Origin: Selaginella moellendorffii
Taxonomy: Eukaryota > Plantae > Lycopodiophyta
Assembly: GCF_000143415.4 (NCBI RefSeq)
Contig: NW_003314348.1
Span: 748,062 to 812,061, forward strand
Direction of reading: 5' to 3'
DNA: 64,000 bases
Notes under the pieces: generated by a model
Told to the model about the DNA's origin: nothing
Database searches by the model: none
What the model saw: only the letters and a program-made list of their open reading frames with translations
Program-made: the position numbers and the translations under genes
Part shown: positions 9,345-16,051 of the stretch, in pieces
Layout of the letters: each line of letters begins with the position of its first letter
Position numbering within the stretch: the first letter of the stretch is position 1

Positions 9345-12050
9345 ATGGATGATGGAGGAGGAGGAGGAGGATTAAAAGTAGCAGTGGGGATCAAGAGCAG
9401 CAAGCGCAGCATTGGAGCTCTGAGATGGGCTTTCGACAACGCCGTGAGTGCCGGAGATGAGATATATCTTGTGCACGTCCAGCATCCAATCCGATATGTT
9501 CCAACTCCAGGCAAGTTTGGACGCACAGTGGCCACTTTTTTTTTGCCCCCGAGTTTTATGGAGGTGTGTTGTCTTGTTTGTAGTGGGCAATCTCGCTGTT
9601 GCGCAGCTATCGCCGGAGAAAGTAGCTCAATACGCCAAGACAGTGCAGGACAAGATTAATGCATTTGTGGAGGTTTTCAAGAGCTTGTGCGACGCTCATC
9701 AGGTTTTTTTTTCCTTTTTGTTCTTCCCAAATTCGTTTGCATGCAAGCTTGGATTTTTACGTTCTTGTTCCAGATCAAACCAAACTACGTCCAAGTCGAG
9801 AATGATTCCGTCCAAAAGGGCCTTTTGAAGTCCATCCATGCACTGGAAATCCAAAAGCTTGTTCTAGGAAGCGCTGGACGCACTGGCCTCACACGGTAAA
9901 AAAAATGTAGAACAAACCTTCGCAAAACTTACAGGATCGTGTTCTTCTTCTCCTCCTCCAGGAAGCTCTCTGGCCCAGGAACCGGAGAATACGTCGCCGC
10001 TCGAGCGCCAAGCTTTTGCTCCGTCTGTGTGATCGCCAAGGACAAGCTCCTCCCGATCAAAGCTCTGGACGATTCCCGGTCGATCTCGTCCGCCTCTTCG
10101 CGAACCTCCGACTCGGAGCGATCGTCGAGCTCGTCCTCCCAAGGTAGCGTTTTGCCTTCGTTCTTGCGGAAGCGTAGAGCGAGAAACGTGTCTTTGGATC
10201 TAGCAGACTTGGACTCTCATCCGCCTGCCCGTTTGCATGGTTTGCCAGAAGGCCTTGGACAGATGTGGAACGTCGGCTTCCTCTCGCGCTTTCTCTCCTC
10301 CGGATCCCCCACCACCCGGCAGCAAGCTGTTCTAGCGTCCAGTCCTCCTCCGGAGAATGCTCCGCTCGACGAGATAAGTGGCGCCCGGGTCTTTGCTTCT
10401 CCGTTTCGTGATCGAACAGGCGCGTCCTCGGAAGAGATTGAGATTGTGGAGCTCGGTGACGGTGCTGCTAGTGGAAGGATGGCGCTGATCAGCCACAAGT
10501 TGGGAGGAAGCAGCAAGTCTGGGAGTAGGAGTTCTTCCAGTTCCGGTCCCAAGTCGGTGGTGAATGGGGGAGCTTTAACAAAGCTTGGCAGGTCCGAGAG
10601 CTCGTGCAGTTCTGGTATCGAATCATCTGGAACGGAAGATTACAGGCCATTACATGATAAAGTCACAGTTACCTCGAAGGCCGCTCTTGATGTCGAAGAA
10701 AAAGAAACGATGTCCAGGGACATGGCGAAGCTCGAAGTTGATAGCTCCAGCACTGCCGACCGAGAGGATGACTCCCTTGAAGGACCTTCCATGCCAGCTC
10801 CGCGAACACGGAGGAAATCCCTCCAAGAACTGTCGCTGCTGTCTCAAAGGACGTTCAAGGAGTACGAGTACGCCGAACTCGAGGCAGCCACCAAGAACTT
10901 TTCTTTGGATCTCAAACTGGGAGAAGGAGGCTACGGCCTCGTCTTCAAAGGAAAGCTCCATGGCAGAGACGTAGCCATCAAAGTGTTGAAGAAGGAAGGC
11001 TTCCAAAGGACGCAGGAATTCCAGCACGAGGTGGAGCTGCTGGGGAGGATTCAACATCCACACATGGTGGTTCTGCTCGGTTGCTGCTCCCACAGAGGCT
11101 GTCTCGTCTACGAGTTCATGGCAAACGGGAGTCTGGATGACATGCTCTTCTGTAAGAACGGAACTCCCCCACTGCCGTGGTATGCGAGGTTTCGAATAGC
11201 AGCCGAGGTAGCATCAGCGTTGTACTTCCTTCACAACCTCGGACCAGAGCCAGTAGTTCACAGGGACCTGAAGCCAGCAAACATTCTTCTCGACCATAAC
11301 AACGTGAGCAAAGTTGGCGACGTCGGTCTCGCAAAGCTGGTTCCAGAAAGACTGGCCGCAATCAACAGTACGTACTTCAGGGACACCACACCTGTCGGAA
11401 CCTTCGCTTATATCGACCCGGAGTACCAGAGAACCGGGCTGTTCGGTCCAAAGTCGGATGTCTACGCGCTTGGAATTGTTATCCTCCAGCTGCTAACGGG
11501 AAGGGGACCTGTTGGAGTTCATGCCATCGTTGAAGAAGCTATAGAGTGTGGGAACTTTAGCAGTGTCCTGGACCCGAGTGCTGGAGATTGGCCGGTTGGA
11601 AAAGCCGAAGAAGTTGCCTGCTTGGCTCTGCAGTGTGCTGAGATGAGGCGGCGGCAAAGACCGATGCTCGAGACTGTTCTTCCGATGCTGGATGGTGCCA
11701 GGAACTATGCCGAGAATTGTGCTGCGATACATGCCACCAACAGAGCTCTCGCCGGGGATCCGAAAGCCGTGCCACCGTCCATCTTCCTGTGTCCCATTTT
11801 TCGGGTAAAGCTTGCTTTCTTTCCCGGATCGTCTGCTGATATTTCCGTTTTGTATTCTTGGCAGGAAGTAATGCAGGAGCCTGTGGTGGCCGCTGATGGA
11901 TACACATACGAGTACGAAGCGATTAGGCAGTGGTTTCAAGCTCACGATACATCACCTTTGACAAATCTGAGGCTGGAGCACAAGCAACTCACGCCCCACC
12001 ATGCTTTGAATAAGCTGATTACTGAGTGGAAGACGAGGGCCAAGGTCTAG
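9345..12050 (+). CDS. U-box domain receptor-like cytoplasmic kinase (PUB33/34/35-type: USP-like N-terminus, kinase, U-box)
   Basis: N-terminal VAVGIKSSKRSIGALRWA (USP-like). Kinase LGEGGYG, HRDLKPANILLD, GDVGLAKL, GTFAYIDPEY. U-box PPSIFLCPI..EVMQEPVVAADGYTYEYEAIRQWF..TSPLTNL. Confidence 0.9.
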
Positions 12051-12104: not shown

Positions 12105-13042
12105 TCATGCGTAGTCTCCTAGTCGAGCACCGGCTACCATCCAGCAGTCTTTATAAGGACCATTGACGACCTGCGATGGTTATATTCATTTGTTAAGAAA
12201 TGAGACATCAATCCAAAGAGCATTACTCGTTGCAGAGAAAACGTGAATGCCGCTGTCCTTGTCTCTCCGGATGTTGTCTTGAATCTCACTTCAATAGCTT
12301 GAACAGCTCTTCTCTCACCTCGAAACACCATAGGAGAAAGCACCTGACATTCAAGTTCCACAGAAGTAAAGAATTATAAACGACATAATAAAAGGATTTT
12401 ACCTTCCAGTCGAGGCAATTCACCATTGTGACATAGCTGGAGTACTTGAAAGACTCTATAAACTCTTGACAAGTCAGTACCCTTGCTGAGGCATCCCAAG
12501 CTCTAGCTCTTGGCTGGAAAGAATTTTGAGAACTTGTCATAGACAGCACGAACTCTACCTTGTCATCCGGAATTTCGTCGTATTGATAAGGCAATGGCCT
12601 CATCGCGAAATCGAAAGCCGTCTTGATCCCACTGTCTTCCTCAGGCCAGTCATTCCGCATCAACGCATCCATCTAGAACCTCCCATTCATCGCAAATTTC
12701 GTGAGCAGAGAAAGGCGGCAGCACCTGAGCTTTCACCACGGTACTTGGCGGCATCAGCGGCGTCGGCTTGCGATTCTCCAGCGGCCACGAATGGCCCGAC
12801 GTGTTCACGAAGCGCATGAAATCGGACGCCAGATTGTCCTTCCCTGCTGTGCGCGCCATCGAAAATGCCCTGAGAAAGGAAATACCAATCCGATCAATCT
12901 TACCAGGCATTGCGAGCGCCAGAACGACGGGATTTCGACGAGTTCCTGCCGAAATATCCACCCGGTGCCTGAGAACCGATGGAGCTCGTGGAAATCCCGT
13001 GGAGAGAGACGCAAGCGCGCCATCGCCAAGAGCTCTCCCCAT
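12105..13042 (-). CDS. Uncharacterised protein with a transit-peptide-like N-terminus (possibly DUF4864/NTF2-like)
   Basis: Exons splice to ...PTPLMPPSTVVKAQ-MDALMRNDWPEEDSGIKTAFDFA...FTFSLQR-VVNGPYKDCWMVAGARLGDYA*. It resembles a conserved algal/plant plastid family (PxxVVxAQLxAL.NDxP..D.G; GxxKxCWM). The family label is from memory. Confidence 0.6.
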
Positions 13043-13148
13043 ATCCACAAGAGATGGGACAAATAGGGTTTATGGTATGAGTTCCTATAGTTGGAAAGTA
13101 TCGTTAGAGCCCTAAAAACAGAGGGTTTACTATACTCGGAAAGTGCCG

Positions 13149-13937
13149 TTATGACATGTTTACGAAAACAGGTTCCACGTAAGTGACAAAGCATATGGCC
13201 GCTAGGGCAGTCCCAAAGCCTTGTTCTACCTCGCTCTCTTGGATCATGAAATCCTCTTCGAAAACTTCGTAGTCCTCTTGATCGAATCGCCGCTTGAAAA
13301 TGCCCTCCAGATCCTTCTGAAGGATTCTCCTGGCCTCCGATTCTCTGGCGTGGCCACTGTATTCCGCCGCATAGCCACCGATCACTGCGTTGTCTCGCTT
13401 TCTTCGAATCTGTGGATCCAAAGTTTTCAATGGGATCGAAGTTCCTGGAGAAAGGAGAGTGATTTCTTGCCTGAATTCGGGCAACTCCAGCCGTGATTCT
13501 GTCTCCCTTGACACCATTCATACTCGCCATGATCGCTTCCATCACCGCTCCATGCCGGAAGAATGGCTTTGCTTCATGGAACTCGATCTTGGAGGATTCC
13601 GGAGGGATCACTGATGAGTACTGCGTGATGTTGAAATCCATGATCCCTGGAAGAACGCGTGTAAGCAACAATCCAATCGAAAGAGGGAAAGCATACCAGC
13701 CGATTCCAACGCTAGATCATACGATCCAGTCTCCCAGGGATCGGCGCCATCGCCAGCATCAGTCTGGCCAAAGCCCTTCACCATGAAGTAATGCTTGGGA
13801 ATCCGCGAGCCAAACAAAACCCCGTGCCCGCCGGCGACCAGCTCCATGAAATTCAGCTTCATCGCCTCCTCCCTCGAATGCGCGTGCCGCAATCCCAAGT
13901 TCTTGGGCAGCGGCTGGACATTGTGCTTGGAATCCAT
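13149..13937 (-). CDS. Pyruvoyl-dependent arginine decarboxylase-like proenzyme (PvlArgDC, AaxB/PdaD family), 3 coding exons, 225 aa
   Basis: Exons 13937-13697, 13646-13471 and 13409-13149 join in frame: GSRIPKHYFMVKGFGQTD..DPWETGSYDLALESAGIMDFNITQY-SS-VIPPE..FFRHGAVMEAIMA..IGGYAAEYSG..FGTALAAICF. Self-cleavage Ser-Ser motif and the AEY glutamate are present. Confidence 0.88.
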
Positions 13938-14145
13938 CGATTCCAGCCCCTGCTGCGCCAACAATTCACACACAAATCTCCTCGCAGAAGAATCTGCAAG
14001 AGAGAAAGCAAATCGATCGATCCAACCTCGCGGAAGAATCAACAAGAGCAAGGCAAATCAATCGATCCCAAAACCCCCAAACGTTCCTCGTTTAAATAAT
14101 CTCTCTCCCTCTCTCTCTCCAACAAGTGTCCACTGGACAACAGGA

Positions 14146-14155
14146 GCCACGTGTC
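14146..14155. promoter_or_regulatory. G-box/ABRE upstream of the PvlArgDC-like gene
   Basis: GCCACGTGTC (ACACGTGGC on minus), about 50 bp upstream of a minus-strand TATA-like TTATTTAAA (14091-14099). Confidence 0.4.
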
Positions 14156-14170
14156 AAACAATGCGCTGAG

Positions 14171-16051
14171 TCAGCAACCATCAATGGAGTGAATATTCGT
14201 GTTAGCCAGGAGGACATATGCCGCGCCATCGTCTGGATGGAGATCTAAAGCTCCAATCGCTGCCCTAGCGCCGCGCTCGCGATCGCGGTAGCTCCGGGAA
14301 GCGCCCAGCAAGCATCGCCACTCCAGGACATTGGGAACAAAGGGCATGCTCGCGATCAGCTCCTCGGCCTCGTCTAGATGCCCAGCGCGGCACAGCAGAT
14401 CGACAACGCAGGTGTAATGCGGCTTCCTCGCGCCCAGATTGAAATCCATCGCCATCGACACGAAGATCGATCGGCACAGCGCGAGCTTCCCGGCGTGGAC
14501 GCAAGCCAGCAGCGCGAACGAGAAGCAAATCTCGTCGGGGCGGACGAGCGCTTTCATCGCATCGAAGCTCTCTAGGGTTTGAGCGTAGTGGCCGTTCTGG
14601 GCGTGGACGACGACGATCGCTGCCCACGCGATCGTGTCGGGCTCTGGTATTCGATCGAAAGTCCGCTTCGCGAGGTCGAGGTCGCCGCTCTGCGCATAGC
14701 CGACGAGCATCGCCGTCCAGGAGACGACGCTTCGCTCCGGCATGGAATCCAGGAGAGCTTTGCTCGTTTCTATTTGCCCTAATTGGGCATTTGCAGCAAT
14801 AAGAGTGTTCCAAGAGATTAAATTGTGCTGTGGCATTGTGAGAAAGATCCAGTGGGCGTTCTCTACTTGACAACTTTGTGAATATGCTGCTAGCATGGCG
14901 TTCCACGACACTAGGTTTTTCATGGGCATGAAATCAAACAAGTGTTTAGCCTTTACCAAATGCCCGTTTTGGGCATATGCTGAGATCATGGCTGTGGAGC
15001 TAATAACATTCTTCTCCGGAAGAGATTCATAGAGATTCTCGGCATTTTCTAGGTCATCGTCTTGGGAGTAGGCAGTTATCATAGCGGTGGCAGAGACTAG
15101 GTTTTGCTCCGGCATTCGATCGAAGAGTCGCTGGCACTCGCCACGATGCCCGCTCTGGGCGTATGATACGAGCATCGCATTCCAGGAAATTAGGGTTCTA
15201 TGTGGCATTCGAGCAAATATTTCCGAGGCCTCGGCCAGATTCCCGCTCTGGCCGTAGGCAACGATCATCGCGGTCTGGGAGATCACGTCGTGCTCCGGCA
15301 TGGAATCGAAGGCGTCCTTGGCCAGATCGAGCTTTCCCTCGTTCGCGTAGCCCGAGAGCATCGCATTCCACGAGACGAGGTTTCTTTCTTCCATGGCGTC
15401 AAATATTTGCTTCGCCCTCTCGATCTGGCCGTTCTGCGCGTAGGCCGCGAGAATCGCTGTCCTGGAGATGAGATTCGGCTCTGGAATGCTGTCGAAGAGC
15501 TGGATCGCTTGCGCCAGATCTCCCTCCTGCGAGAATTCGGCCAGGAGTGCCGTTGTTGACACCGAATCCCACTCCGGCATTTCATCAAAGAGCTGCTTGG
15601 CTCGATCCAGACGAGCGTTCTGAGCCAGCGTCGCGACCACCGCCGTCCACGACACGAGATCTCTCAGCGGCATCGCGTCGAAAATTCTCATTGCCTCCTC
15701 CGGATTGCCGTCCCTCCCGATCGCGGTGATGAGCGTGTTCCACGACACAACGTTCTTGGAGGGGAATCTCGAGAAGAAAGCCCTGGCGTCGTCGATCCGG
15801 CCGTGGTGCGCGTAGGCCGCGAGCATCGCGTTCCAGGCAGCGAGATTCCGGAGGGGCATTTCGTCGAAGAGATTCTTGGCACTGACGACATCGCCCATCC
15901 GGGCGTAAGCCGTGATCATGAACACCCATGAGAATGAGTCCTTGATCTGGATTCGATCGAAGACCCGTCGCGCCTGGTGGAGATCTCCCCTCTTTCCCAG
16001 CAGCTCGATCAGCTTATTGCTCGCGAAGGTGTCGTGGGAACTATTGCTCAT
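14171..16051 (-). CDS. PLS/E-class pentatricopeptide repeat protein (no DYW), intronless
   Basis: Many ~31-aa repeats (FD.MP..N.VSW.AM..AYAQ.G), then ACVHAG..HYTCVVDLLCRAG..MPF.P...W..LLGA (E domain). The protein stops before any DYW domain. Confidence 0.93.
   Translation of the reverse strand: MSNSSHDTFASNKLIELLGKRGDLHQARRVFDRIQIKDSFSWVFMITAYARMGDVVSAKNLFDEMPLRNLAAWNAMLAAYAHHGRIDDARAFFSRFPSKNVVSWNTLITAIGRDGNPEEAMRIFDAMPLRDLVSWTAVVATLAQNARLDRAKQLFDEMPEWDSVSTTALLAEFSQEGDLAQAIQLFDSIPEPNLISRTAILAAYAQNGQIERAKQIFDAMEERNLVSWNAMLSGYANEGKLDLAKDAFDSMPEHDVISQTAMIVAYGQSGNLAEASEIFARMPHRTLISWNAMLVSYAQSGHRGECQRLFDRMPEQNLVSATAMITAYSQDDDLENAENLYESLPEKNVISSTAMISAYAQNGHLVKAKHLFDFMPMKNLVSWNAMLAAYSQSCQVENAHWIFLTMPQHNLISWNTLIAANAQLGQIETSKALLDSMPERSVVSWTAMLVGYAQSGDLDLAKRTFDRIPEPDTIAWAAIVVVHAQNGHYAQTLESFDAMKALVRPDEICFSFALLACVHAGKLALCRSIFVSMAMDFNLGARKPHYTCVVDLLCRAGHLDEAEELIASMPFVPNVLEWRCLLGASRSYRDRERGARAAIGALDLHPDDGAAYVLLANTNIHSIDGC

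Follow-up and report, generated by a model that had tools for sequence, protein, structure and literature searches.

In textbook accounts, plant polyamine synthesis proceeds via PLP-dependent arginine and ornithine decarboxylases, and the characterised land-plant route from arginine is a PLP-dependent arginine decarboxylase of the alanine-racemase fold. A different enzyme family, the pyruvoyl-dependent decarboxylases of Pfam PF01862 (PvlArgDC), consists, as far as its characterised members are known to us, of arginine decarboxylases only. Two of the closest described systems are found in this family: i) PdaD of Methanocaldococcus jannaschii (PDB 1mt1, 1n13, 1n2m, 2qqc and 2qqd), which carries a Ser-Ser cleavage site, and ii) AaxB of Chlamydia, which belongs to a longer type of member (~190-205 aa), is cleaved at Thr-Ser and serves the acid-dependent arginine:agmatine exchange system aaxABC.

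Here we analysed LOC112341617 of Selaginella moellendorffii, a minus-strand gene in a 64,000-nucleotide stretch of genomic DNA (the window, to whose first letter all coordinates refer). Its product shares with PdaD the Pfam family, the fold (target TM 0.84), the Ser-Ser site and the catalytic Asn and Glu at aligned positions; on the other hand, the two are 22-24% identical, the plant protein falls under the TIGR00286 equivalog cut-off, and it has a conserved N-terminal segment of 45 aa, extra loops (e.g., DPWETG) and a spliced nuclear gene. With AaxB it shares the longer member type and conserved sequence blocks (the Thr-Ser site of AaxB also occurs in many relatives of the plant protein), but the plant gene has no porin or antiporter partner, and AaxB-like sequences, assigned without a taxon label, fall in another clade. 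From the canonical plant arginine decarboxylase, which presumably catalyses the same reaction (arginine to agmatine), it differs by an unrelated fold and cofactor.

Full-text literature searches turned up no study of a PF01862 protein from plants or algae, in agreement with an earlier reading of this DNA, made from its letters alone (the sequence-only reading), which knew of no characterised land-plant member. Two candidate precedents were set aside: the “prokaryotic ADC” of a duckweed paper is PLP-dependent, and the enzymes of a virosphere paper are AdoMetDC-derived. Some orthologs are auto-named “arginine decarboxylase” in databases. Because both the chemistry and the family itself are familiar and some orthologs already carry such labels, the finding is an extension of a known kind: the gene is real, expressed and ancient, encodes a green-lineage member of an established enzyme family, and is apparently lacking in seed plants.

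Structure and transcription of the Selaginella gene

Scripted exon joining, with both strands read, produced three minus-strand exons that splice into 678 nt and encode 225 aa; this product was letter-for-letter identical to P0001, the NCBI entry [quoted passage not shown]. The three-exon, 225-aa model with PvlArgDC motif order in the sequence-only reading was therefore correct, with every motif it quoted present, and its central claim, that a vascular plant carries a pyruvoyl-type decarboxylase gene of PF01862 interrupted by spliceosomal introns, was borne out.

The transcribed region, delimited by contig ends in four runs, spans 13126..14058 on the minus strand (~822 nt after splicing). It opens with a 5’ UTR of 121 nt (13938..14058) that contains no ATG, the first ATG of the transcript being that at 13937. 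The coding part of exon 1 (13697..13937) supplies residues 1-80 and the first base of Gly81, i.e., a 45-aa pre-domain segment followed by the start of the PvlArgDC domain (PF01862 positions 1-28). Intron 1 (13647..13696; 50 nt, GT-AG, phase 1) is joined from 13645/6 to 13696/7 in the four runs. Exon 2 (13471..13646; 176 nt, PF01862 positions 30-85, 48.7 bits) holds, as located by sequence and alignment, Asn86 (13632-13630), the putative self-cleavage site Ser91/Ser92 and the FFRHGAVMEAIMA block; the two serine codons, already placed at 13612-13617 by the sequence-only reading, are indeed there and read TCA TCA (13617-13612). Intron 2 (13410..13470; 61 nt, GC-AG, phase 0) is joined from 13409 to 13471 in the four runs. 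Exon 3 (13149..13409) consists of coding sequence at 13409-13152 and the stop codon TAA at 13151-13149, covers PF01862 positions 92-161, and encodes the C-terminal strands as well as the IGGYAAEY block, where Glu155 (13364-13362) aligns with archaeal Glu109. A short 3’ UTR follows (13126..13148), with contigs ending at 13126 in runs X1, X2 and X9 and at 13136 in X5. An alternative donor for intron 2, the GT at 13485 (an in-frame intron of 76 nt, leaving 220 aa), was rejected on two grounds: all four runs join 13471 to 13409, and the GVGR.Q residues that it would remove are kept by orthologs.

The RNA evidence came from contigs of four public runs, presumed to be RNA (X1, X2, X5 and X9, from four different studies), which were aligned to positions 12800-14300. 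Both splice joints were present in all four, thus confirming a spliced transcript of the gene, and in X9 a single 822-nt contig ran from 13126 to 14058 with introns 1 and 2 both removed. The joint of intron 2 reads CT..GC on the plus strand, i.e., GC..AG on the gene strand. Contigs stopped at 14053-14058 on the 5’ side and at ~13126 on the 3’ side; in X2 Illumina adapter directly followed 14053, suggesting a transcript 5’ end near ~14053. Depth was zero in intron 1, at 13055-13105 and, in X1, X2 and X9, upstream of ~14075. Such zero-depth stretches, together with the spliced joints of this gene and of its neighbour, indicate that the runs are RNA rather than DNA.

Intron 2 was also found unspliced, in contigs that span 13383/13394-13500 in X1, X2 and X5 and occur in two allelic versions, while X9 yielded no unspliced intron 2 contig; retention of intron 1 had no contig coverage in any of the four runs. 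Both forms of intron 2 thus exist, in a ratio on which contig depths are not a reliable guide. When intron 2 is retained, the frame changes after Gln139 and the product lacks Glu155. Because such a product would be inactive, retention could represent regulated unproductive splicing. The GC donor, a detail missing from the sequence-only reading, is a peculiarity of Selaginella, since the moss and fern orthologs use GT at that site.

The setting of the gene is that of ordinary plant nuclear DNA, not of a contaminant: a 626-aa PPR protein is encoded upstream on the same strand (14171-16051), a protein kinase plus U-box gene lies on the other side (9939-12050, plus strand), and GC content is uniform over the region. 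Directly downstream is a small spliced gene (12286-13051, minus strand; a 57-nt GT-AG intron at 12847-12903), without a Pfam match and with transcription seen in X1 and X5, two of the four runs.

Family membership and predicted catalysis

Searched against Pfam, the whole protein matched PF01862 from end to end (113.5 bits, E 1.2e-32, cut-off 22.7; profile positions 1-161 of 161), as the family assignment from the letters had led us to expect. Moreover, each exon matched the profile on its own and in colinear order (1-28, 30-85 and 92-161), which rules out a chance pattern of open reading frames. Among solved structures the sole sequence matches were two M. jannaschii entries, 1n2m (E 7e-5) and 2qqd (E 3.5e-4). 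In these alignments Ser91-Ser92 matched Ser52 and Ser53 (S53A in 1n2m), Asn86 matched Asn47 (N47A in 2qqd), Glu155 matched Glu109 (E109Q in 2qqc), and Asp74 matched Asp35, which we take to be the guanidinium ligand of the archaeal enzyme. Asn86, Ser92 and Glu155 were invariant across 55 homologs and Asp74 nearly so; in the Selaginella gene the reading frame is intact and the catalytic residues are all kept. An AlphaFold model computed with 55 homologs (pLDDT 92.7, pTM 0.86) was matched by Foldseek to 1n2m_A (E 2e-13, target TM 0.84, rmsd 3.1), the next fold, that of pyruvoyl histidine decarboxylase, being far weaker.

The intact site and catalytic residues agree with the two chains, of 91 and 134 aa, that had been predicted from the letters. 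By homology with the M. jannaschii enzyme, we infer that the 225-aa proenzyme would cleave itself between Ser91 and Ser92, aided by Asn86, into a beta chain of 91 aa and an alpha chain of 134 aa; Ser92, at the start of the alpha chain, would become the pyruvoyl group. Arginine would then be bound through its alpha-amino group, as a Schiff base with the pyruvoyl carbonyl, which would act as the electron sink for loss of CO2, with Glu155 as the putative proton donor.

The curated functional models gave a different picture: neither NCBIfam equivalog cut-off for arginine decarboxylase was reached (58.2 against 106.95 for TIGR00286; 49.6 against 207 for NF009064), and a Sorangium homolog likewise stayed under them. 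By these scores the protein is a family member that lies beyond the curated groups from which the functional name derives.

Green-lineage homologs and the origin of the gene

Homologs were sought among 5.8 billion proteins and by cluster look-up, the profile search covering the best 120 of 412 matches. They were found in liverworts (Marchantia, Riccia and Calypogeia), mosses (Sphagnum and Ceratodon), a fern (Adiantum nelumboides), streptophyte algae (Spirogloea and Chlorokybus) and trebouxiophytes (Botryococcus, Coccomyxa and Myrmecia bisecta). These green homologs are 49-71% identical to the Selaginella protein; for the moss Ceratodon the identity is 67-70% over about 200-216 aligned columns. 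A separate search with the 58-aa exon 2 (63 proteins) had as its top match P0095 (1314 aa), which was dismissed as a likely repeat artefact of 20 short repeated matches. No seed-plant homolog, and no Vitis protein, was present among all 75 matches of one protein search. On the other hand, a table of differentially expressed genes labels grapevine VIT_09s0002g02030 as “pyruvoyl-dependent arginine decarboxylase” (PMC5895676); the label may be spurious or may denote a distant seed-plant relative, and because of it loss from seed plants is not proven.

Exact spliced translation was used to map four annotated orthologs to their genomes. Both introns of Selaginella, and no others, recur in Ceratodon and Adiantum at identical position and phase: a phase 1 intron between the Ala and the Gly of AG-I, and a phase 0 intron behind the Gln of R.Q. 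The three species also agree in the length of exon 2 (176 nt). Both domain introns are lost in Marchantia, and Coccomyxa has six introns at different positions. Introns common to a moss, a lycophyte and a fern place the gene in the land-plant ancestor and rule out a recent transfer.

The phylogeny was examined in a careful maximum-likelihood tree of 55 rows and 218 columns (LG+C20+F+G4), from which near-duplicate or very long-branch rows (P0075, P0111, P0144, P0138, P0106, P0122 and P0133) and truncated rows (P0029, P0055, P0127 and P0131) were omitted. Green-lineage sequences, including 5-7 metatranscriptome rows that carry no organism label, formed one clade (support 97/91). Within it land plants were also one clade (99/91), and the zygnematophyte Spirogloea was their sister (87/81), as in the accepted species tree. 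The liverwort sequence P0010 from Calypogeia fissa fell with the mosses (100/97), apart from Marchantia and Riccia; a paralog, assembly contamination or a transfer could each account for this.

These data bear on the view that the gene is a recent bacterial acquisition of Selaginella, an assembly contaminant or a decaying pseudogene. The family is mostly prokaryotic and the NCBI product name is “uncharacterized”, yet the spliceosomal introns are removed in RNA, plant genes stand on both flanks, the intron positions are common to moss and fern, the branching of the green clade, with Spirogloea beside land plants, is broadly that of the species, and the frame is intact with all catalytic residues kept. 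We take these points as refuting this view and give it almost no weight. Of the three origins offered by the sequence-only reading (horizontal transfer, endosymbiotic transfer, or retention from algae with loss in seed plants), the last fits the green-lineage clade, the common intron positions and the lack of a seed-plant match, while transfer in its recent form is ruled out. The ancestor shared by green algae and land plants would then already have had the gene, with vertical inheritance since; its two introns would have been fixed before mosses, lycophytes and ferns diverged, and the gene would have been lost, apparently, in seed plants.

Among the matches listed, the prokaryotic relatives at 41-55% identity were Sorangium, Dethiosulfatarculus/Desulfarculaceae, Ignavibacteriae, Omnitrophota, Methanothrix and assorted MAGs. 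A group of Sorangium and Saccharothrix was the sister of the green clade in the 55-row tree (98/91). In a 64-row quick tree the Sorangium group fell within the same 27-row clade (support 99), while in a 111-row quick tree it was placed elsewhere, so that its placement is unstable between trees. The Sorangium rows themselves (P0035, L009, L022, L026 and L028-L030) sit on a long stem. These myxobacterial (Myxococcota) homologs, at 47-51% identity, resemble the plant protein in sequence and in their position beside the green clade, but differ from it by a Cys-Ser-Ser site motif and by having neither introns nor polyamine neighbours. Their proximity to the green clade in two of the three trees hints at a transfer between myxobacteria and the green lineage, in either direction.

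A chlamydial donor, whether at the establishment of the plastid or through a later transfer, was weighed separately, the sequence-only reading having judged two sequence blocks closest to the chlamydial subfamily. The HGAV.E.IMA and IGG.AAEY blocks do occur in AaxB-like sequences such as P0146, which the Atlas places beside a cluster auto-named AaxB; but bacterial, archaeal and viral members of the long-form subfamily carry them widely as well. In the 55-row tree the AaxB-like set (P0146, P0099, P0105 and P0120, assigned by Atlas features and sequence motifs rather than by a taxon label) fell in a different clade from the green sequences (100/99), together with signal-peptide forms, and the proposed closeness to the chlamydial subfamily was thus not upheld. 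Moreover, aaxABC was gained by the ancestor of Chlamydiaceae, via transfer, after its split from Parachlamydiaceae (PMC2720952), and a gain that late argues against an old chlamydial gift to plants. On these data, with the AaxB-like set standing in for chlamydial sequences, a chlamydial donor is very unlikely. On the contig of P0146 an agmatine deiminase gene and a polyamine-type ABC transporter gene adjoin the decarboxylase gene; aaxA and aaxC were not found there. The genome contig scan used narrow peptide patterns, which exclude chlamydial AaxB.

Other parts of the family were observed in passing. PF01862 homologs occur on viral contigs (IMG/VR, L040-L053), including giant-virus MAGs and one contig of 436 kb, and Atlas clusters of 54-66 members are labelled 89-100% Nucleocytoviricota; a viral link was discarded, as neither the IMG/VR nor the giant-virus homologs came out as the sister of the green clade. 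Four sequences (P0104, P0105, P0107 and P0115) are long forms of 286-479 aa; in these an unrelated N-terminal stretch of 130-330 aa, in some cases with a membrane segment, precedes the decarboxylase domain.

Localisation, substrate and implications

The N-terminal 45 residues of the Selaginella protein, which precede the Pfam domain, are modelled at pLDDT 79-89 and conserved with bryophyte orthologs from about residue 9. The sequence-only reading had allowed that this extension might be a targeting signal. This part was not supported: the 45 residues are not transit-peptide-like and the transcript offers no upstream ATG. With no ATG in the 121-nt 5’ UTR, translation starts at Met1 and the protein lacks a transit peptide; it is probably cytosolic. 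Elsewhere in the green clade, moss and liverwort proteins have Ser/Thr-rich, acid-poor N-terminal extensions of ~100-190 aa that look like transit peptides for organelle targeting, while the leaders are Ala/Arg-rich in streptophyte algae, Lys/Glu-rich in trebouxiophytes and missing in Selaginella. Judged by N-terminal composition, localisation probably varies across the clade. The Marchantia model (L036/P0005, 373 aa) has a single intron, situated in the N-terminal extension, and none in the domain; Met82 (MAAATAVVG...) looks like the true start of its transit peptide, so that the model may be over-extended.

Our preferred reading is that LOC112341617 is probably a functional nuclear gene for a PvlArgDC-family decarboxylase, most likely an arginine decarboxylase that yields agmatine, and that it is ancient, vertically inherited and apparently lost in seed plants. 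A related possibility keeps the fold and the self-processing but assigns another substrate (ornithine, lysine, histidine or a modified amino acid) or another role, such as pH or stress homeostasis. Several lines of evidence point that way: i) the scores stay under both NCBIfam arginine-decarboxylase equivalog cut-offs; ii) the green clade stands apart from the solved archaeal enzyme (22-24% identity); iii) the closest prokaryotic relatives lack polyamine neighbours and often have signal peptides; iv) land plants already own a PLP-dependent arginine decarboxylase. Regarding the third, no polyamine genes were found near the closest named relatives (Sorangium, Dethiosulfatarculus, Methanothrix and an Acidobacteriota MAG). 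Against a different substrate or role stand the characterised members of PF01862, all arginine decarboxylases to our knowledge, the nearly invariant Asp74 aligned with Asp35, and the one AaxB-like relative that is linked to agmatine deiminase. On balance we regard a different substrate or role as unlikely.

Many of the closest prokaryotic relatives (L001-L030) begin with a clear signal peptide, among them those from Methanothrix, Omnitrophota, Dethiosulfatarculus and MAGs of Acidobacteriota and Actinomycetes. For PF01862 an exported subfamily is an unusual picture, and it suggests that the role of the subfamily may differ from cytoplasmic polyamine synthesis.

More speculatively, and with considerable doubt, we propose that the green-lineage PF01862 proteins form an old, uncharacterised eukaryotic subfamily whose role goes beyond duplicating the PLP-dependent arginine decarboxylase. 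Possible roles include an organelle-targeted source of agmatine in bryophytes, the sole arginine decarboxylase of some trebouxiophytes, or action on another substrate. In Selaginella, retention of intron 2, with its weak GC-AG borders, may serve to tune the output of the enzyme. The preferred reading, an arginine decarboxylase of ancient green-lineage descent, is easy to test, given the small size of the protein and the genetic tractability of Marchantia.

A second decarboxylase, structurally unrelated to the first and making its own cofactor, would add an unstudied step to polyamine and agmatine metabolism in non-seed plants. From green algae to ferns the gene has persisted over several hundred million years, yet it is apparently missing from seed plants; it offers a clean case of an ancient gene gain followed by lineage-specific loss.
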